From NCBI GenBank assembly GCA_009103225.1, contig RHPI01002823.1, positions 687,608 to 751,607 of the forward strand: 64,000 nucleotides of DNA, written 5' to 3'. Source of the DNA: Chlorokybus atmophyticus. Taxonomy: Eukaryota; Plantae; Mesostigma and Chlorokybus algae. A program made the position numbers and the translations under genes. A model generated the notes under the pieces. The model did no database searches. It was not told where the DNA came from and saw nothing but the letters and a program-made list of their open reading frames with translations. Shown here piece by piece: positions 455-22,149 of the stretch (its first letter is position 1; every line of letters begins with the position of its first letter).

Positions 455-2648
455 CTACTCCACAGAGACGTTGTTGAATGTGGCCATTGCCAGCGCAGGC
501 GAGCACTCTGCGCCATACGTCACCGATGACACGCCCATGCCAGCAAAGACAGGGCCGAGGACAGCGGATCCGTCTGGAGGCGTGAAGGAGTATATGACAG
601 TCCAGGACTCGCCATCCAGAGATGCTGCGGGAAAGCACAACAAGAAGCAAGGTGTGTGCGTGCGCATGCACGTGTCTATGTCACCTGAAGTAGAGTGCAT
701 GCGTGCGTGCATGTGTGTCACCTGAGGCATTGATGGTGGCACCAGTGCGTTCAATCTGGAGCCACACTGGCAGGGAGGCTGGGTTGAAAGGCAAACCAAG
801 CGCAGGTATGTCGAATGCTACTGTCGTTCCATCTTGGATCGCGCGATACTGCAAAGGTTGTCCACACTCAATGTGTGAACCCTGCTTGTTGTGCAACACT
901 GCATACCTGTACAGAAACCGTGGTGGCAGCTTCCCATGTCTGCCCTGCAATGACCTCAACTGCAGGGGAACCTGTTTGCACACATATCATCAGCGCACAA
1001 GTGTACAATCAACAGCGCAAATGCTGGTTCAAGTAACAACTACCAACCAGGAGTGAGGTTGGAGCGTAGCACGAGCGCGGACTTCATGGCGGGAAAGTTT
1101 GTGAGGTCTTGCGTCAAGACTGTTGCAGTGATGGTGACGTCGCCAGCGTGTGTCGCAGTGTCGTGCACGTAACGGAACGAGTCCGCCACATCCCACATGT
1201 TTGCTGCGCCACAAAGCATGTCACTGTTAATGCACGAGGCTGCTAATACCTTACCTCGTCACTGAACCCAACATCCACTGGACATACCGCCGCAGTTGGC
1301 GATCTCCCACACGCCGGTGTCGGCAGTGAATGAGGTTGTTCCTGGAGTTGTAGAGGCAACGTCTGTCGACTCGAAGCTGCCTGGTGTTGACGAGGGCGGG
1401 GATGGCGTGTCCGCTGCAGGAGGTGGCGATGGAGACGGTGTGTCCACAGGTGGAGAGGGAGAGGGAGAGGGAGTGGGTCCACCACCTATCTGAGGCACTG
1501 CGCACACACCGCTGTAAAAAACTTGTGGGCAAAGCGAAATGATACTCTCAGGATGCCAATAGTGGCAATGACAACAGCAGTGGTGTTTGCACCAGAGCAG
1601 ACAATGCCATATGGGTTGTAGCAGAGGTCATCATCCCAGGTGCCAGGATGATCCGGGGGCGCGTTGCCGTAACCGACCATGAACACGCAGTACTCGTCGC
1701 GGCTCGGGTACGTGTTGTCCGGCTCATACAACATGTCGTTATCGATCCACCAGTCTTGATAAGTCTGAGGAATGGTTCCTGTGGGCGTGGCGATTCAGAT
1801 TCAGAACACACATGATGTCATAATGTGCCAGCTGGACAAAAATGCGCGCGTGCACACATATTCGGAATTGTAATCATTGATAACACCCCTGTGATTGCAA
1901 CAGGTATGAGATTAGCAGCGAAAACAACGTCTCTCCTTCCTCACCTGTGCCCCAGGTGTGGCCACCCCAGTGAAACAGGTTGACGCGTGCCGGGCATTGA
2001 GCTTCTGTCGGGGCAGGACAGGGGAGAGCATCCCATTCTGGCCCATCAATCTCGGCGCTGCGAGAGAGGCCGATCCTGACATGATGATAACAGTCAGCTT
2101 GTTTGCATGTTGATAACACCTGTTGTTCTGCATGCAACTTGGTGACAGTGGGCCACATACCAGACGGTTATGTAGGGGGCGATCTTGCTCAGGATGGTGT
2201 TTCTCTCCGCCTCGCTGTATATCTGTGCAAGGGTCCCGCCAATGCTCTCGCAGTGGACCTGACCGTCGTTCCATAAGAACTGCTGGCTTTCGCCCAGGTT
2301 GTACACTCCCCTGCAAGAAAGAAAGAAAGTTCACAACCCATCACACTGGTTGATGTTGGCAAGACGGCACCCATACTTACGTTGCAGCATCAATGAATGG
2401 GAAGCAGTAACACTGCGAGTTGGGGTCGCTTTCGTCGCCAGTCAAGCAGAGCGCACCATTGGAATCTTCAGTAGGGCAAGCACCTGCACCAGAGCAGCAT
2501 TCATACCATACGAGTGAGAGAACAACATAATTGCATCGATTCTAACCACAATACCTTCAGTGAGCAATGGTTTACTGACCAGCAGCAAGCACAGCAAGCC
2601 AGCCCATACGAGGACACTGCGAGTGGCTTGGAACACGACTGAACCCAT
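455..2648 (-). CDS. Secreted C-type lectin domain + Pro/Ser/Thr linker + DUF1349/ConA-like beta-sandwich protein, copy 1 (10 exons)
   Basis: Hand-spliced exons 2648-2555, 2483-2381, 2310-2161, 2074-1945, 1778-1593, 1497-1288, 1203-1048, 971-907, 848-722, 624-455, all GT-AG with consistent phases. Signal peptide MGSVVFQATRSVLVWAGLLCLLLVSKPLLTEG. CTLD motifs WNDGQVHCESIGGTLAQIYSEAE, VWIGL, YEPDN..DEYCVFM, WDDDLCY..GIVC. PSPSP linker. C-terminal GANMWDVADSFRYV..GDVTITATV..KSALVLRSNLTPGS..LPVWLQIERTGATINASASLDGESWTVI..VFAGMGVSS..ATFNNVSVE*. Confidence 0.85.
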
Positions 2649-4149
2649 TGCTATCAACTGCTGGACACACTGGGCAGATGAAGCCGTATACTTTTGTGAC
2701 TAGGCAGGGTGCGTATTATATACAACTAACCGCGCGAGTTCCCATGCCCAAGGGCGACGGATGTCGTGATAATTACAACAACGGCCTGACTTGTTGGAAT
2801 TGACAAACAGACGCTGACTGACTGACTGACTGCCTACCTGGTGCTTGCTTGACGGACTGGCCGAAAGTGCGTTACATACGAGAAAGTGCAGCCTCCGTGT
2901 CTTGAAATGGCGTGAAGAAAGGCTGTACTTGAAATCAAGTCAAAGGCAGCTGTCTATGCTGCAAACCCTGAACGCTGGCATGCATTGGCAAGCAGGACGT
3001 GGTTTGGCTGAACCTGGGGCAGCTCCTGTCAGCATTTATCTCGTTAAGCGCAACGAAGTACACCGTGCCCACCGGAGCAATCTAGCGTACTTTCGTGCTC
3101 CACCCATTACCATCAGGTTGCAAATTGTTGATAACTGAGCAGCCTGACACGTCTCCTTGCCCAAGTCAAGCAATTCGACCGACTTCCTCCACGTAAGCAA
3201 GCATGCTTCACATGAGCGTTGCCAGAGTTCAAACCGTGAGACTGGCGTCAACAATGCATGCAACACGGTCAGTGATAATCGCTGACGCCAGAGTGACTGC
3301 CGCCCGCTGCACCTCACAAAGCGCATGGGCCAGTCATCGCAGGACAGCAGCAGCACACCTGGTCAGGGGGACTGTACACACCCGCCATGCAGAGCGGCCT
3401 CAAGAAGCGCCGCCGCCCCTCCTTGCTTCGACCGCCCTCCCCCGCCGCATGCTTCTCGCAAGCTTGAAGCTGTCCGGCCTGCCACCACCACCACCACGCC
3501 GACCAAGCTGCCTGCCTCCTGTACTGTAACACATGGCGCTTCTCCTCCAGCAGCTGATAGGCTCTGCTGCGGCAGAGCTGAGGGCAACAGGGACGTGCTG
3601 TACGCACTTGTCAGTGGGCCCAGTGTTGTGATCTGAGACACACGGTGACATGCACTAGCAGTACTGCAACAAACTTCAGTCGAGATTTACTGGCTTGCAC
3701 TAGCTTTGAGGGTAGGTCGCACTATTTAAGCACACCTTCAATTACGCAAGGCTCACCCCAAAAGGCTGGAGCCAAGTCACATTTGGGGGTGGGTGGGCTA
3801 AGTGAGCAATGTAGGGCACACCCAGCCGGGCCCGCTACATGTTGTGTGAGACGAAAGTCGTTGTCGCGACAGATGTGAGCTGCATGTGATCGCGAACAAG
3901 TCACCATTCACTTCTCGTGTTGATATCAATTCGTGGCGCTCAGCACACAAAGGAAAGCAATGTGTGAGTGAGCGTATGTAAAGGGTATGCTACTATGGCA
4001 ACATGTGTGCACATCGTGATCTGCTAGTGTACGATTGCCGCCAGCGCGTGGCTTGCATGCGCGTGCTGTGTTTGAATCGTTTAGGAGTGCTCTGTAAATG
4101 TGCATTCATGCTGATGTGCATGCATCGTTGCAGCGGTGACACCGATACT

Positions 4150-4192
4150 AGATTTGCAAGTGTACACTGAACCAGTGTACACTTGCAAATCT
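4150..4192. repeat. Perfect 20-bp inverted repeat with 3-nt spacer
   Basis: agatttgcaagtgtacactg-aac-cagtgtacacttgcaaatct; the arms are exact reverse complements. Confidence 0.9.
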
Positions 4193-4809
4193 GGTGGTGT
4201 TGCGGGGGTAGGGATAGGGATACATCTGCGTGCGTGCTGACAATGGGGCAAATTGATTGTGTGTGCGTGTATACGAACAAACGCACACAGTGCATGGGGT
4301 GTGCTGTACTTCACATCGCACAGTGCTGTGTTCACCAGGTTAAACAAGGGACAGACAAGTAACAGTACCAGCAAAGACCTCCGTGTTTGTAAATGCTGCA
4401 GTGCGCAGGACAAACACAGACACCATGGCTGTGCACACAAGGTATTGACTCTGTCGGACACATCCATAACAACGAATGGGCTGGGCATTTACCTTGCTAA
4501 CTCAAGAAGAGAATCAACGATCACACACCGGCAGCTGGCACCTAGATTCAACAGTTGACCAGCCTGGCACATACCGCCACAGCATTCTGTGCGTACATGT
4601 GCGAATGGACACATGTGAACAAACACACCCATGCATTTACGCACTTGCTCTGTGCTGAGTCTGCGTGGCATTGTCTCACTGCTGAACCTATAGCATCAAT
4701 AGATGTCCTTCAAGTATATCCAACAGCAACAATCATAGTGGCAAGACAGTTCTTAATACAGTCCCGTCAATGCAAATTCCGATGTTACATGTCACAATGT
4801 TCAACGGTA

Positions 4810-5010
4810 GCATGATGCCAGCCCTGTACAAAAAAGTCCTTCCTGCCCAACTGCACACAAGTGCTAAACAGCACTATCAACGCAAAATCCTACCTTACCA
4901 TGCAAGCCCTGCACACAAAAGTTGATATGCACAGCGGCAAACAAGTGCTGAGCAGCACTGTTGCAGCGATACACGTTCCTACCACACTACACCTTATTGG
5001 TGAGAGATGA
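4810..5010. repeat. Diverged duplicate of the 3' flank of lectin copy 1 (~190-440)
   Basis: Shared strings such as caaaagtcctt(t)ctgc, caagtgctgagcagcactgttgc and caccttattggtgaga occur downstream of both paralogues, so the duplication included 3' UTR/flank. Confidence 0.7.
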
Positions 5011-5062
5011 CTGCTGATGTAAAGAACCACACTTGATTCCGCCACATAATGACCTTCCCATA

Positions 5063-7430
5063 CTACTGCACAGCGACGTTGCTGAGTGTAGCCGTTGCGA
5101 GTGGCTTGCACGTCGACCCATACGTCACCGAACACACGCCCATGCCGACATAGATGGAGCTGAGGAGCGGGGAGCCAGCCGCAGGCGTGTAGGTATTGAT
5201 GACTGTCCAGGACACGCCGTTGGTAGATGCTGCAGAGAAGTACAAGGACAGAGGTTAGGTCAACCATGTGGTGTTATGTCTGTGTATGTGAACGCACGCG
5301 GGCGCAGGCGCATACATGCACTCAGGCGTGCATGCACGCACATTGAGAGCTTTGTGTCTAAGTGTATGTTCACCTGAGGAGGTGAATGTGGTACCGGTAC
5401 GGGAAATCTTGAGATATACTGGCAGGGTGCACGGGTTGAAGGGCGAACCTGAAGCAGGGAAGTTGGTTGCTACTGTCGGTCCGCCTTGTGTTTCGCGATA
5501 CTGTTGGATATATTTCTCTCATCAGTACCATCAAGGGTTGTCGTCTCAGTCAGTTACTAACAAAGCTCGCAAACCTGCACGAAAATGGTGGTAGCAGCTT
5601 GCCATGTCTTTGCAGCCAAAAGTTCAACTGTTGGGGACCCTGTTCAATTATGCTGTCAGCAATGCTGGGACAAGCAGGCAATCAAGCAGCACTCTTACTC
5701 ATACTTGTGAACACAGCTACTTGCCAGGCGTAAGGTTGGAGCGCAGCACGAGTGCGGCTTTCATGTTGGGGAAGTTCTTCAGGTCCTGCGTCAAGACTTT
5801 TGCGGTGATGGTCACGCTGCCGGCGTAAGTTTTGGTGCTATACACATAGCGGAAGGAGTCCGCCGCATCCCACATGTTGGCTGCGGGTATACAACACATC
5901 AGCCTTAGTGTGCCAAGCTCCTGCATTGCCAACAACCCAACATGTACCACACATACCGCCACAGTTGGTAATCTGCCAGACACCAGTTTTTGCAGTATAT
6001 GTGGTTGTGCCTGGCGTCGTGGCAGCGATGTCCAGTGACACGAAGTTGTTTATAGCTGTTTGCGGCCCTGGTGGTGGGGATGGTGGCGGGGATAGTGTTG
6101 GCGTTGGTGGTGGCAATGATGCTGTCGGTGGAGGGGAAGAAGGATTGGACGCACCTATCTGGGGCACTGTACAGAATGTTGAGGCAAGTGAGAACAGTAC
6201 GTGCATTCGAGTGTCTGTGTGCACGCACGCGTGTGATATGTGTGTATGCCTGTAACACACATGCACTGTACTGTAACAAAATGTGATTAGACAACTGCGT
6301 AAGGCACGTAACATTCCGTACGCACCAGAGCAGACGATGGGATATGTGCTGTAGCAGAGGTCGTCATCCCAAGTGCCTGGTTGAGCGGGCGGTTGGTTGC
6401 CGTAGCCGACCATGAAGACGCAGTACTCGTCGCGGCTGTAATACGTGTTGTCCGGCTCATACAACATGTCGTTATCAATCCACCAGTCCTGATAGCTTTG
6501 AGGGATTGTTCCTGAGCAGCGTGATAAACACATCTGACGGTCACTCACAAAGCAATGCCATGTCAAGACACTGAATAACAGTGAGGAACCAGCACAAGCA
6601 TACATACATCAGGAAAGTAAGGCCCGCATATGGCAGGCTGCAAGTACAGTCAAAGTGGACAACAACACGCCTTTGATAGCAACAACAGTGTGGTAACGCT
6701 AGCGACAACTCTCACCAGTGCCCCAAGTGTGGCCACCCCATTTGAAAAGGTCGACGCGCGCCGGGCATTGTGCTTGGGTTGGGGGAGGACAAGGCAGAGC
6801 GTCCCACTGAGCGCCGTTAACAGCATCGTTGCGAGAGAGGCCAATCCTGGTTGTTGTACACAAGATGCTCAGTGCTTGTTGCCGCATGACTGCTACTGCT
6901 TGCTGCAAGGAGGCAAGGCGCTGCTGTACCAGACGGTTATGTAGGGTTTGATCACGTTCAGAATGGTCGTTTTCTCCGCCTCACTGTATATCTGCGCAAG
7001 GGTCCCACCGATGCTCTCGCATTGAAGCTGACCATCGTTCCATGTGAAGTGCTGGCTCTCGTCTTGAACTGAGTTGGCTCCCCTGCAAGCAATCACCACC
7101 GTTCAGCGCCTGAATGAAACGTAAGGCAAGCAGTGACGTGCGCTGTCATTCACGTTGTTGCGTCTATCCAAGGAATGCAGTAGCACTGTGTGTTGGGGTC
7201 GCTGGCATCGCCCGTAAGACAGAGCGCACCGTTCTTGTCCTGTGTCGGGCAGGCGCCTGCACACAACAACCACACCATTAGAAAAAGCAAGAGGCACTCA
7301 TGAAGGCAAGCATACCAACATAAAACCCAAGTCACAAGTTACCTTGAGTGGGCAAAGGGGTAGCAACCAGCAGCATCAACAACAAACCAGCCCAGGTGGT
7401 GTAAACAACGGACTGGAACACTGAAGCCAT
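5063..7430 (-). CDS. Secreted C-type lectin + Pro-rich linker + DUF1349/ConA-like protein, copy 2 (tandem paralogue)
   Basis: Same exon structure and phases as copy 1. ATG at 7430 (MASVFQSVVYTTWAGLLLMLLVATPLPTQG), then GACPTQDKNGALCLTGDASDPNTQCYCIPW, TWNDGQLQCESIGGTLAQIYSEAE, YEPDNTYYSRDEYCVFMVG..WDDDLCY, PPP linker, ANMWDAADSFRYVY, SIYVGMGVCSVTYG..ATATLSNVAVQ*. One donor (5724-5723) is GC. Confidence 0.85.
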
Positions 7431-8403
7431 GGCGGTCTACTTGCTGAATGACAACCCACAAACACACTGATCTGTTCAGAACTGAGCTACATGCTGCTTA
7501 TATACGGTGCGAGGACGCACAAGTCGAGCCACGCAAGGCGGCCGCCCACCTGACACGACTGAGCACCATAAAATATGATCAATGCAAGGAAACGGTATGC
7601 TGCCTTCCCGCCTGCTGGCCTGACTGACAGAGGCACGGACCGGCGTCAAAGTTAGCGTACAACAGCAAGCTGCTTACACAGAGGACGTCATGCTGCTGCT
7701 TTCTTTGGCATGTTACTAGGCTTACTGCCTACCTTCTGCCGCGAGTATTGTATGCTCCCAAAATGCCCTGCAACGTCACGACAAGACGGTCTTGTCAACA
7801 GGGCAGCTTGCACGAGGGCAGCCGCTCAACGAACCCACTGGGGATTTGTTGCTGTGAACCCCAGGCGGGTGTAAAGCCCAGGTCACGGCGTTGGTGCTCA
7901 ACATCCACAACCACCTGCGAAAGACCTCAACCAGCAAACCGACAAAACCCTGCATTGGGTCGCATCCACTTGTGACACTGCGTTCCGCCCTGCAAACTCT
8001 CGTCACATCAGCCGGGCAGGTCTATTATCAACTTGAGAGAGAGAAACCTCCTTCCTCTGTGTACTTGCCTTACCTTGCCGACGTGCCCTGTAAGGCTGCT
8101 TGCTGTGTGTCAGCATGCTGAGCGGCGTGTTGATCCGTAAGCTTGCTGCTTGCAAGCGGACAGCGGACAGAGCAAGCAGTCGCTAGGCTAAGATTGGCCA
8201 ACTTGCGGGTGTACAAGTTGAAGTAATTTGGCGTTACCATCAAGGTGGCTGCTTTAAGTGTGGCAAATGAACCGGAAAACGCGTCACTCGGGCACCATAG
8301 CTTTGCGTAAGGGTTTAGACACATGCAGAGACAGTGTCTTGACATAATCAGCTGTAACTCGTCGTACAGAAGCGCCACACGCGAAAGGGAGGTTGAAGCT
8401 CGC

Positions 8404-8552: not shown

Positions 8553-9532
8553 TCTGTCACAGTACAGTCTGTACTGTACATGCCATGTGTTACATCAAGA
8601 CATGCAAGATCATGGCGTTTGCTTTCAGGTCGTAGTATTGATGGCAGGCCAGGATCACATCAGGCAGCTAGCTGAAGCTGGCTTCACTTGAGCCTAGCTT
8701 GAATCACGCATTGGATCACTCAGGTTGGTGAAGTGACTCACCTCAAGTAACTTGTCCTCCTTTTCTTAATGTACCTTCCCCTTGCGGGCTTCACATACAA
8801 AAACAAGTAAATCAAAGCAAGTAAATCTTCTACCTCATCGTCACTCCGTCACGTGACCGCACAACACATGTTGTGCAGGGCCGCACAAGCCCTCGCTCGC
8901 CCCCGTTTTCAACAGTTGTGCAGATATCCATCATAGACGATATCCATGCAGCTGCCGTGCACGCTATGGAAGCGGTCCAATAATCCCAGCGGATGACGTT
9001 GAACCTACATCGACGGCTGAAAACCTGCACAGCTGCTCATCGCGGCACCAACCCGGAGGGCTGTCCTTGAGACACGTCAAGGCACTGCGACTAGTCATAA
9101 GTTGATATCAGCAACCTTCACGGACATCGGTCCTCACAAAGCAAGGCACCAGGTAACGCGCTGCTCGAGCTCTGCGACGCGCACTGCACGGCTACGCGAA
9201 ACCTGGCGGCCGGGCACCGAACGCTCTGGATCTGCCCCTCGCCCGGGCAGCTTTTCACACCAGCCACGTAGAACACATAGAAAGGCCCAGAAGCTTCAAC
9301 CTGCAGTTGTACATAAACTGCTGCTGTCAACGTGAGGGCAAGGGCAGCTTTCCTAACGGCGACAGAGCGAAAGAGACGTTAAACGGCGTGCAAAGTGACC
9401 ACCAAAGCCAGACTGTCTTGCATAGGCGGCGGCGGCAGTGCTGATCGAGGCTAGAGTGTTGCTGTGCTTGTAGTTGGCGGTGGTGTTGACGGGCGGCGCT
9501 TGAAGTGGTTAGGGCTTGAGTGTTTTCACAGC

Positions 9533-12310
9533 ATGGAGGCCGTTGCGTCTTCCTCTATGGCGTTCTCCGCGGCGGCGGCTGCTGCCACCACAACAGCCTC
9601 CAGGTCTGGCAGGGCGTCGTCCAGCAGGTCGTCGTTCAGGGGGACGGCGTCTTTGGGAGGCTCAGCTTTCTTCAACGGCGGCAGCGCTTTGAGGCAGGGA
9701 GTGCGCGCGCAGGCTCGCAGGAGAACGCAAGAAGAAAGGGGTCATGGCCTCCGCGTGGTCTGCGAGAAGGTGGTCGGTATCGACCTGGGCACTACCAACT
9801 CTGCTGTCGCTGCCATGGAGGTGAGCTGGTTATTTTCTTGCCATTAGCTGATTCCACGACATCTGCTATACTCGTTGGCCGCCAGGCAATGTTTTGCGTT
9901 GTATTTTCCAGTTTTGTCATGCATGCTCATTTTCTGTAACGTTGCATGCTACGAGTCTCAAGCTGTCTCAGCTGTCTCTATCACATGCACCAGCTTCTGA
10001 TTAACCTCTGTCCAGGGTGGCAAGCCCACAATTGTTACCAACGCCGAGGGTCAGCGCACAACCCCCTCCGTGGTTGCTTTCACCAAGAGCGGCGACCGGT
10101 TGGTGGGCCAGATTGCCAAGCGACAGGCAGTGGTGAACCCCGAGAATACCTTCTTCAGTGTCAAGCGCTTCATTGGTCGCAAGCATGAGGAGATCTCAGA
10201 AGAGGCCAAGCAGGTGTCTTACAATGTAATCCGCGACAGCAATGGCAATGTCAAGCTGGACTGCCCCAATGCCAAGAAGCAGTTTGCTGCTGAAGAGATT
10301 TCTGCACAGGTAACAGTCATATCTCGCTGTTGTTGTTTCATTGCTGTGTGCATGTTCTGTTTGGAGCATGCAACCTTATCATGTGCGTACTTACATGTAA
10401 TCTGTAACAGGTCCTTCGCAAGCTGGTTGAGGACTCGAGCAAGTTCTTGAATGACACTGTGACCAGGGCTGTGATCACCGTCCCTGCCTACTTCAATGAT
10501 GCTCAGCGCCAGGCCACAAAGGATGCCGGCAGGATTGCCGGTCTAGAGGTGCTTCGTATCATCAACGAGCCCACTGCCGCATCCCTTGCATATGGTTTTG
10601 ACCGCAAGGCCAATGAGACCATCCTTGTCTTTGACCTTGGTGGTGGTACCTTCGACGTGTCTGTCCTGGAGGTCGGTGATGGTGTGTTCGAGGTGCTGTC
10701 TACCTCTGGAGACACTCACCTCGGTGGTGATGACTTTGACAAGCGCATTGTGGACTGGCTAGCGAATGACTTCAAGGCTCAGGAGGGTGTTGATTTGCTG
10801 AAGGACAAGCAGGCTCTGCAGCGCCTCACTGAGCAGGCTGAGAAGGCTAAGATGGAGCTCTCCACCATCACCAACACCTCTATCAGGTTTGTGTTCACAT
10901 TGGTTTCAGTTTTCGTGTATACGTTGTGAGGGTGAAAATTGTGTTGTAATTAACATTAGCATTTCTGCTTGCAGCCTGCCCTTCATCACTGCCACTGCTG
11001 AAGGTCCCAAGCACATTGACACTACCCTGACTCGTGCTAAGTTTGAGGAGTTGTGCTCGGACCTTCTGGACCGCTGCAAGCTCCCTGTGCAGTCTGCTCT
11101 TCGTGATGCCAAGCTGGACCTCAAGGATATCCAGGAGGTCATTCTGGTTGGCGGTTCTACCCGCATCCCCGCAGTGCAGGCCATTGTCAGGCAGATGACT
11201 GGCAAGGAGCCCAACGTCACTGTTAACCCAGATGAGGTTGTTGCCCTTGGTGCTGCTGTCCAGGCTGGTGTCCTTGCTGGCGAGGTGAGTTTTATAGTTG
11301 AGGGTGTTGTGTCTGAGTTACACACTGATTTAAGACTGCTGCAGTGCCTTCTTTGTGCTGGGTTTGGTGATGACTTGGGGCGTAGTCTAACAATTCATGT
11401 TGTTCAGGTTGGCGATATTGTGCTGCTGGATGTCACACCGCTGTCACTTGGTCTGGAGACTCTTGGTGGTGTCATGACCAAGATTATTCCCCGCAACACG
11501 ACCCTGCCCACAAGCAAGTCGGAGGTGTTCTCGACAGCCGCTGACGGTCAGACCAGCGTGGAGATCAATGTGCTTCAGGGTGAGCGCGAGTTCGTCAGGG
11601 ATAACAAGCAGATTGGCAACTTCCGCCTTGATGGCATCCCCCCGGCTCCTCGCGGCGTCCCCCAGATTGAAGTCAAGTTTGACATTGATGCTAATGGCAT
11701 CCTGTCAGTCTCGGCTGCTGACAAGGGCACAGGTGTGTGTTTTGTTCAATTCTGAATATATGTATGTTATATGCAACAGTTGTCATGCGCAGTATATGAT
11801 TTTGTTGAAGTAACAAGGTGGGTATGGGTGGTAGTTTTAATTCGCAATCTCGCTGCAGGCAAGAAGCAGGACATAAAGATTACTGGTGCCAGCACACTTC
11901 CTTCGGAGGAGGTTGAGCGCATGGTCAAGGAGGCAGACAAGTTTGGTGCCGAGGACAAGAAGAAGCGAGAGGCTGTGGACATCAAGAACAATGGTGACTC
12001 CCTTGCCTACAGCACAGAGAAGCAGCTGAAGGAGCTGGATGACAAGCTCCCCGCCGATATCAAGGACAAGGTCAATGCCAAGCTTACCACCCTCAGGGAA
12101 GCCATTGCCTCAGACAACACGGAGCAGATTAAGACCGCCTCCGCTGCGTTGCAAGAAGAGGTCATGAACATGGGCAAGGCTGTCTACCAACAAGGTGGCG
12201 CTGGTGGTGCTGCTCCTGGCGCTGGTGCTCCGGGTGCTGATGCTGCAGGCGGTGCTGCCGGTGGCAAGCCTGATGACGTTATCGACGCAGACTTCACGGA
12301 GAATAAGTAA
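9533..12310 (+). CDS. HSP70B: Plastid stromal HSP70 (cpHsc70/HSP70B, DnaK-type) with transit peptide, 6 exons
   Basis: Exons 9533-9820, 10016-10309, 10411-10886, 10975-11284, 11408-11732, 11859-12310. Ser/Ala/Arg-rich transit peptide ending [17 protein letters not shown]. Motifs [57 protein letters not shown]. Plastid-type C-terminus [12 protein letters not shown]. Confidence 0.97.

Positions 12311-15080: not shown

Positions 15081-22149
<7,069 letters not shown>

Follow-up and report, generated by a model that had tools for sequence, protein, structure and literature searches.

Three kinds of described protein stand closest to the genes reported here. In bacteria, DUF1349 (PF07081; in COG "regulation of enolase protein 1, concanavalin A-like") is an accessory module of secreted multi-domain proteins in Acidobacteriota, Verrucomicrobiota, Actinomycetota, Chloroflexota, and Bacteroidota. 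The solved DUF1349 structures are those of ECA2234 from Pectobacterium (3mep) and of yeast YJL217W/Ree1 (3o12), both free-standing proteins that were deposited as uncharacterised or of unknown function. The second kind comprises the animal C-type lectins, among them the mannose-receptor family, the collectins, and NK-receptor-like C-type lectin domains (CTLDs). To the third kind belong the chimerolectins of plants, together with the only C-type lectin receptor kinase that land plants have. Algal CTLDs and chimeric plant lectins are thus both established kinds of protein, and we know of no report of a DUF1349-type partner domain in plant lectin classifications. Here, two tandem genes, denoted A and B, are described from a 64,000-nucleotide stretch of Chlorokybus atmophyticus DNA (contig RHPI01002823.1), referred to as the window. 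Each gene encodes a predicted secreted protein in which a CTLD is followed by a Pro-rich linker and a divergent DUF1349-like module with a predicted concanavalin A-like (ConA-like) fold.

The gene models were obtained by six-frame translation and hand placement of splice sites. Genes A and B are minus-strand tandem paralogues with 10 coding exons each, and both are intact. Gene A (JGI Chrsp27S04300) occupies positions 455–2648 and has an open frame of 456 residues. Its exons 1–5 lie at 2648–2576, 2483–2381, 2310–2161, 2075–1945, and 1778–1593, and exons 6–10 at 1497–1288, 1203–1048, 971–907, 848–722, and 624–455. All nine introns of gene A are GT-AG. Gene B (JGI Chrsp27S04301, re-modelled here) occupies positions 5063–7430 and encodes 461 residues. 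Exons 1–5 of gene B lie at 7430–7343, 7256–7154, 7082–6930, 6846–6716, and 6511–6326, and exons 6–10 at 6166–5957, 5880–5725, 5639–5575, 5500–5374, and 5229–5063. Eight introns of gene B are GT-AG, and intron 7 (5640–5724) is GC-AG with the donor GCAAGT. The intron phases of the two genes are all identical, the exon lengths correspond nearly one for one, and the proteins are 67% identical. When both models were rebuilt by splicing, the frames were open and the phases matched, in agreement with the initial annotation, which had proposed two intact 10-exon paralogues in tandem. The joined models, taken from window coordinates, were used for the paralogue alignment, the dN/dS values, the seed of the hidden Markov model (HMM), and the tree rows. 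Database searches were queried with single exons or with stored public models rather than with the corrected full-length gene B.

The coding regions divide into corresponding parts. Exon 1 of gene A (2576–2648) contains an ATG and a hydrophobic, signal-peptide-like segment of 24 residues, and it is similar at the DNA level to exon 1 of gene B. Exons 2–5 (1593–2483) encode a four-Cys stretch and the CTLD identified by Lectin_C matches, with WIGL at residue 109, EPDN at residue 171, and WDDD at residue 200. Exon 6 (1288–1497) covers the Pro/Ser/Thr-rich linker and runs on into the initial strands of the C-terminal module, which begins at residue 256 in alignment A3. The remainder of the module is encoded by exons 7–10 (455–1203), as assigned by profile search, HMM, fold model, and hhalign. 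In gene B, the coding part of exon 1 (7343–7430) carries the start codon and a signal-peptide-like segment and is covered by RNA contigs. Exons 2–5 (6326–7256) encode the Cys stretch and CTLD, with Lectin_C matches in exons 3 and 5. Exon 6 (5957–6166), also seen in RNA contigs, encodes a linker with SPPP and LPPP repeats and the start of the module. Exons 7–10 (5063–5880) encode the DUF1349-like module, as assigned from the sequence, the exon-7 profile search, and RNA contigs. This order of signal-like N-terminus, Cys-rich segment, CTLD, Pro-rich linker, and C-terminal domain is the one first read from the sequence, and all of the C-terminal motifs quoted in that reading are present.

The transcript evidence consists of assembled intron-free contigs from two studies. 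The runs were taken as RNA, since a lack of introns is what contigs of transcripts would show. In gene B, all nine coding introns are confirmed at the coordinates given above by contigs of three runs (two studies), including the GC-AG intron, whose joint is present in contigs of X1, X2, and X3. The four introns that interrupt the module, already recognised in the initial annotation, are all among those confirmed. An in-frame TAG at 7439–7437 precedes the ATG at 7430 in the same exon of the gene B transcript. Translation therefore begins with the short N-terminus and its hydrophobic core (MASVFQSVVYTTWAGLLLMLLVATPLPTQG/ACP), rather than with the extended N-terminus of the public model, and a start codon followed by a hydrophobic leader is present in the transcript. 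The 5′ untranslated region (UTR) contains a further GT-AG intron (7444–7549, minus strand) that is absent from the initial annotation. It was recognised from a contig with a loose end at 7447 that matches positions 7554–7579, and the boundary 7443/7550 was placed from four shared letters that allow canonical sites. As far as the contigs go, the 3′ UTR covers 4757–5062 (minus strand), with record 3 of X1 spanning 4757–5229.

For gene A, the joints among exons 2, 3, 4, and 5 are confirmed by RNA contigs. At the 5′ end there is one contig only, and in it exon 2 is spliced to sequence farther upstream, with the signal-peptide exon 1 skipped. The upstream sequence forms two non-coding leader exons at 3603–3111 and 3025–2838 (2838–3603, minus strand), with joints at 2483/2838 and 3025/3111. 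This form cannot encode the full protein because an in-frame stop lies just before exon 2 and no start codon follows. The observed leader is at least 680 nucleotides long across the two upstream exons and contains several short open reading frames (ORFs). Its origin may lie in an alternative promoter farther upstream, in transcription that reads through from a unit not yet annotated, or in a non-productive isoform with a regulatory role. A short run of the tetranucleotide CTGA at 2812–2832 is intronic and adjoins the donor at 2838.

These transcripts raise the question of whether gene A is decaying or non-productive, with protein made from gene B alone. The skipped signal exon and the stop before exon 2 speak for such a state, as does the stretch 2545–2743, which no contig spans. 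No RNA contig covers exon 1 of gene A; assembled contigs drop rare isoforms, so this does not imply that the exon is not used. The intact frame of 456 residues, the canonical splice sites, and a signal exon that keeps both its ATG and its GT donor argue against decay. The ratio dN/dS is also well below 1 in both domains. We regard decay of gene A as quite improbable, and its product would be secreted if the predicted signal exon is used. Genes A and B are treated as real, expressed, spliced, tandem-duplicated nuclear genes.

The JGI Chlat1 set contains four paralogues of the full-length type, namely P0054 (Chrsp27S04300, gene A), P0055 (Chrsp27S04301, gene B), P0001, and P0056 (Chrsp23S03732). 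P0054 is identical to the gene A model from residue 26 to the end and differs in the first exon, for which the public model uses a donor near 2880 that is seen in no contig; the contig donor is 2838. P0055 misses the GC donor of intron 7, which scrambles exons 7–9, and it carries an N-terminal extension of 47 residues that is ruled out by the in-frame TAG in the transcript. Both public models of the locus need correction. P0001, the third paralogue, has 437 residues, is 71% identical to A, and lies on a small unplaced contig. The public model of the fourth, P0056, ends after the lectin domain. The precomputed public annotation of all four paralogues lists PF00059 only. No third copy was detected in the window by tblastn. 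A contig of X3, from a run labelled as the same organism, aligns to 1944–2080 with approximately 90–95% identity to exons 4–5 of gene A and 15 listed differences. Its probable source is a further paralogue, similar to P0001 or P0056, or else a sister strain.

The similarity of genes A and B at the DNA level reaches approximately 260 bases beyond the stop codon, and the duplicated unit therefore exceeds the coding region. Divergence between the two was measured by the Nei–Gojobori method. The dN/dS value is lowest for the Cys stretch together with the CTLD (0.14), intermediate for the module (0.29), and highest for the linker (0.52); dS is approximately 0.85. The values of 0.14 and 0.29 indicate purifying selection on both folded parts since the duplication. 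The sequence of the linker evolves like that of a low-complexity spacer. It is an extensin-type, Pro/Ser/Thr-rich segment of approximately 40 residues, with the repeats SPSPSPSPP and SPSPPP in A and SPPPT, LPPPT, and SPPPSPPPG in B. From this composition, the linker is probably hydroxylated and glycosylated.

The CTLD had been called from the sequence alone, and that call holds for both genes. The stored full-length models of all four paralogues pass the Pfam gathering score of 22.6 for Lectin_C (PF00059), with 31.7–35.5 bits for P0054 (gene A), 37.7 for P0055 (gene B), 38.4 for P0001, and 34.9 for P0056. Single exons 3 and 5 of both genes give Lectin_C matches that are below threshold and that fall at the correct, non-overlapping profile positions 4–36 and 71–106. 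When the four paralogues were used in a profile search of the PDB, nearly all of the matches were CTLD proteins, including the PLA2 receptor, DEC-205, Endo180, CLEC2D, and LOX-1, with a best E-value of 9e-10. Exon 5 by itself gave only chance matches in the PDB with phmmer. The WIGL core is found at A109/B115. The four conserved cysteines of the CTLD fall at A79, 183, 205, and 213, an additional pair occurs at 128/136, and the pattern suggests how the disulfides would pair.

The Lectin_C match, WIGL core, Cys pattern, and position of the Ca2+/sugar motif are shared with the animal C-type lectins. In mannose-binding protein, the Ca2+/sugar site reads EPN...E...WND. The corresponding region of the algal domain reads E171-P-D173...E181...W200-D-D, and carboxylate side chains are found at all five positions. 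The two canonical Asn residues are thus Asp in the algal CTLD, which has EPD and WDD where the animal domains have EPN/QPD and WND. The algal CTLD further differs by an insertion of approximately 40 residues with the extra Cys pair between WIGL and EPD, and no collagen, transmembrane, or other animal partner domain is found in the algal proteins. The plant chimerolectins and the C-type lectin receptor kinase of land plants likewise combine a lectin domain with another module, are extracellular, and belong to the plant lineage. In contrast to these, the algal proteins have no kinase and no membrane span.

The C-terminal 200 residues had been proposed to form a β-sandwich of the DUF1349/ConA type. 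The assignment was examined by an exon-7 profile search, profile–profile comparison, a PDB profile search, and a fold search of a model, and each is in accord with the proposal. The exon-7 profile (alignment A1, both genes; a 51-residue exon) was searched against 1.84 billion representative proteins and returned 53 matches. One of these, and clearly the best, is the Chlorokybus protein P0001 (E-value of 7e-28). The other 52 include multi-repeat proteins with DUF1349 scores of up to 122 bits, and several are named at source [quoted passage not shown]. Those examined among the 52 have DUF1349 repeats and bacterial hallmarks in their names, domains, or gene context; P0004, for example, is encoded among bacterial two-component and transporter genes. 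The taxon labels of most matches rest on names, domain content, or gene context rather than on taxonomy records. The Cys-rich matches P0005, P0015, P0021, and P0024 were considered as candidate eukaryotic proteins and were set aside, since nothing in them pointed to a eukaryote.

An HMM constructed from three algal modules matches bacterial modules end to end with 50–80 bits in hmmsearch. Comparison of the algal pair with 40 bacterial modules by hhalign gave a probability of 99.8% and an E-value of 2.8e-28 over 174 columns; 37 of the 40 bacterial modules match PF07081 individually at E-values of up to 0.001. The homology extends end to end over approximately 175 residues at 28–37% identity. 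The motifs G.G.D.W...D.F.Y, GD..I.A.V, K.g.m.R, W.rl.R.G..f..y.S.DG..W, vG.avtS, and atFdNV are common to the algal and bacterial modules. When exons 6–10 were searched singly against Pfam, no relevant family appeared, and the pieces are too short for this to count against homology. In the PDB sequence-profile search with the module, the only matches were 3mep and 3o12, the yeast structure at an E-value of 0.06.

The AlphaFold2 (AF2) model of the gene A module, computed from an 89-row alignment, has a pLDDT of 88.5 and a pTM of 0.88 and forms a two-sheet jelly-roll sandwich of 14 strands with one short helix. A Foldseek search of the PDB with this model returned 225 matches at E-values of up to 0.001. 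The two DUF1349 structures, 3mep and 3o12, rank first, with TM scores of 0.67–0.78 at 11–12% sequence identity. The matches listed after this pair are mainly GH16 enzymes, the ConA-like C-terminal domains of GH43 xylosidases, and legume lectins. A shape search of the ESM Atlas retrieved bacterial DUF1349 multi-domain proteins with TM scores of 0.80–0.84 and rmsd values of 1.6–2.1, so the same fold is predicted for the algal and bacterial modules. The GH16-type catalytic motif E-x-D-x-x-E is absent from the module sequences of A and B, and the module is therefore taken as non-catalytic. By sequence homology and modelled fold, the C-terminal 200 residues are assigned as a divergent DUF1349 module with a ConA-like fold, even though the Pfam cut-off is not reached.

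The algal module differs from its bacterial relatives in several respects. It scores below the Pfam cut-off, contains two conserved cysteines and a five-residue insertion near the C-terminus, and is interrupted by four introns. It occurs singly and is fused to a CTLD, whereas the bacterial modules occur in tandem arrays and no CTLD was found on the bacterial matches scanned. The two cysteines are kept in A (283 and 441; window positions approximately 1290 and 500), in B (289 and 447), and in P0001. One is located at the position of a serine in a bacterial G-S-G motif, and the other lies in the insertion of approximately five residues relative to the bacterial modules. The pair may form a lineage-specific disulfide.

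Because the nearest relatives of the module are bacterial, bacterial contamination or an assembly chimera was considered as a source of the C-terminal half. The module contains four spliceosomal introns that are confirmed by RNA contigs in gene B, and contamination is thereby excluded. In spliced transcripts, the exons of the CTLD are joined without a break to those of the module. The genome also has no fewer than three diverged paralogues that carry the module (A, B, and P0001), and the base composition is steady across the gene. An artifact of this kind is extremely improbable.

Relatives of the complete proteins were sought in word-index searches of 5.8 billion proteins with the full protein P0001 and the module of P0054 as queries. 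Full-length relatives were found only in Chlorokybus, as the four paralogues; such an index detects only proteins with 5-mers in common and restricts their length, and absence from these searches is therefore weak evidence. An alignment-based word search returned 1171 proteins at E-values of up to 1e-5. Among the 120 listed of these 1171, no eukaryotic or other green or streptophyte protein was found, and only metagenome or bacterial sources and names appear. In the literature search, DUF1349 was not found together with either a C-type lectin or a green alga. The pairing of CTLD and DUF1349 is thus new to the searches that were run and seems to be confined to Chlorokybus. The initial annotation had described this architecture as one not known from algae or plants, and the same picture emerges here.

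The origin of the module was addressed with a scan in which each bacterial and archaeal species was represented by a single genome and a 12-row alignment served as the query. The scan confirmed 523 bacterial loci, of which the best 80 are 28–37% identical to the query. These 80 belong mostly to Acidobacteriota, Verrucomicrobiota, Actinomycetota, Chloroflexota, Planctomycetota, and Bacteroidota, and many are metagenome-assembled genomes from soil or peat. An IQ-TREE phylogeny of 88 modules places the three algal sequences in one clade (support of 100) on a long stem, inside a group from Acidobacteriota, Actinomycetota, and Chloroflexota. The sister group (SH-aLRT 93) consists of small Acidobacteriaceae and Solibacteraceae sequences. 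Two of its members were read (L007:2884–3564 and L026:2806–3546), and both are single-module proteins of 226–246 residues from uncultured Acidobacteriaceae. L007 begins with a hydrophobic signal-like leader, and both L007 and L026 are below the Pfam DUF1349 cut-off. A 169-row FastTree gave the same algal placement with a support of 81. The best bacterial exon-7 match is a PQQ-dehydrogenase fusion, and arrival of the module through this fusion type was rejected for A and B because the fusion modules form a separate clade in the 169-row tree.

The tree of the C-terminal domain with bacterial homologues, which the initial annotation had called for, thus nests the algal clade among soil-bacterial modules. 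The pattern fits an old transfer from soil bacteria followed by the gain of four introns, without proving it. The suggestion of a possibly horizontally acquired domain therefore stands insofar as the nearest relatives found are bacterial; the transfer itself is inferred from these trees. Alternatively, DUF1349 could be old in eukaryotes and lost in most green lineages, with the module inherited vertically or exchanged among eukaryotes. DUF1349 occurs in fungi, and the yeast protein YJL217W (3o12) is a top structural match. A preprint reports that DUF1349 is enriched in heterotrophic chrysophytes. In a language-model feature search, the cluster ranked first is dominated by diatoms. The long algal stem, with no donor closer than about 36% identity, would also be compatible with a eukaryotic history. 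Against it, only one of the 53 exon-7 matches is from Chlorokybus and every other one examined is bacterial. No other green or streptophyte protein appears among the matches listed in the word searches, and the yeast protein matches the profile at an E-value of 0.06 only, compared with 50–80 bits for bacterial modules. We consider a eukaryotic route doubtful, although it retains appreciable weight, and a soil-bacterial source is preferred.

The arrangement of domains suggests a mechanism. The leader, supported by transcripts for gene B only, would be cleaved and the protein secreted into the wall or mucilage. The spacer with its SPn repeats would form a stiff, glycosylated rod, as in the hydroxyproline-rich glycoproteins of algae and plants, and would keep the two heads apart. 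One head would hold a wall or matrix polymer, while the other would bind a second glycan, either the alga's own or microbial. Binding at both ends would cross-link the matrix, or would tether and agglutinate bacteria. The module itself would have come from soil bacteria, where it accompanies secreted enzymes as an accessory domain. After the transfer, it would have gained four spliceosomal introns and two lineage-specific cysteines.

Glycan binding is predicted for both the CTLD and the module. The only pointer to the class of ligand for the module comes from its bacterial partners, among them pectate lyase, xylanase, and glycosyl hydrolases. The partners retrieved from the ESM Atlas are Ig-like domains, a PLD-like domain, a GHL10-type glycosyl hydrolase, and pectate lyase, and one xylanase fusion is present among the bacterial DUF1349-module proteins. 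The module might instead be something other than a glycan binder, with a role in protein binding, oligomerisation, or Ree1-like regulation, which would leave a C-type lectin with one binding head and a non-lectin tail. The literature search found no published binding data for any DUF1349 member, and the Pfam entry for the family reads "unknown function". Its fold, in contrast, is that of lectins, CBM-like modules, and glycosidases, and the closest module types are found on pectate lyase, glycosyl hydrolase, and xylanase proteins. The construction of the protein for the secretory pathway (predicted signal peptide, conserved cysteines, and extensin-type linker) also speaks against this alternative. 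A non-lectin tail is judged unlikely, though it deserves serious attention.

Taken as a whole, real tandem genes for a secreted, two-headed glycan binder with a module of soil-bacterial origin constitute the best explanation, and one that we hold to be rather probable. A number of observations count against it. The only 5′ form observed for gene A omits the signal exon; a stop lies a little upstream of exon 2, and beyond it no usable in-frame start codon is found. The module scores 13.6–24.3 bits against the Pfam DUF1349 gathering cut-off of 32.4 bits, and the match is limited to profile positions of approximately 111–164. To our knowledge, no lectin activity has been demonstrated for DUF1349, and Ree1, its representative in yeast, has not been described as a lectin. 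The Ca2+ site of the algal CTLD is a variant, and the AF2 model of the CTLD, computed from a four-sequence alignment, reached a pLDDT of 36.5 only, from which no conclusion on the fold was drawn. The trees included algal and bacterial modules and no other eukaryotic DUF1349 sequences, and a diatom-dominated cluster came first in the language-model search. The identity to any bacterial module is at most about 36%, and the stem branch is long. The sister group is long-branched as well, with moderate support (SH-aLRT 93 and 81 in the two trees).

Other features of the window were also recorded. Upstream of gene B, a multi-exon gene for a chloroplast-type Hsp70 (DnaK-like) is located on the plus strand at 9460–12310; with this intron-containing neighbor, the locus is ordinary nuclear DNA. 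The 2.4-kb spacer between A and B contains a near-perfect inverted repeat of 23 nucleotides with a 3-nucleotide loop at 4147–4195, approximately 560 bases past the 3′ end of the gene B transcript as covered by contigs. A long low-complexity tract rich in CA/TG extends from 15300 to 19500 and contains many spurious ORFs on both strands that are rich in His, Thr, Arg, Cys, and Ala.

Exon 6 encodes the linker together with the first strands of the module, and any exon-shuffled module would consequently have moved with its spacer. A broader scenario is offered tentatively and is judged less likely to be true than false. A DUF1349-type, putative carbohydrate-binding module from soil bacteria would have entered the lineage, acquired introns, and been carried by exon shuffling, Pro-rich spacer included, to a number of unrelated secreted proteins, among them those of the CTLD genes. 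For the family, the Pfam DUF1349 model misses the algal branch, and the algal module is a good target for assigning a DUF1349 ligand. Chlorokybus, a member of the earliest-diverging streptophyte branch, is found on land surfaces in the company of soil bacteria. A protein that is predicted to be secreted and has two putative glycan-binding folds, one typical of animals and the other of soil-bacterial enzymes, is a candidate for building mucilage or for dealing with microbes in this setting. The genes add a case to the debate on bacterial gene transfer in the plant lineage before and during the move to land. If the transfer is true, what moved was not an entire gene but a domain, which was afterwards put to new use. 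The interest of the pair is moderate when considered alone and would grow should the modules turn out to be a toolkit that was acquired by transfer and then re-used. If both transfer and shuffling occurred, this would be a lineage-specific toolkit for assembling wall and mucilage and for handling bacteria in the earliest-diverging subaerial streptophyte.

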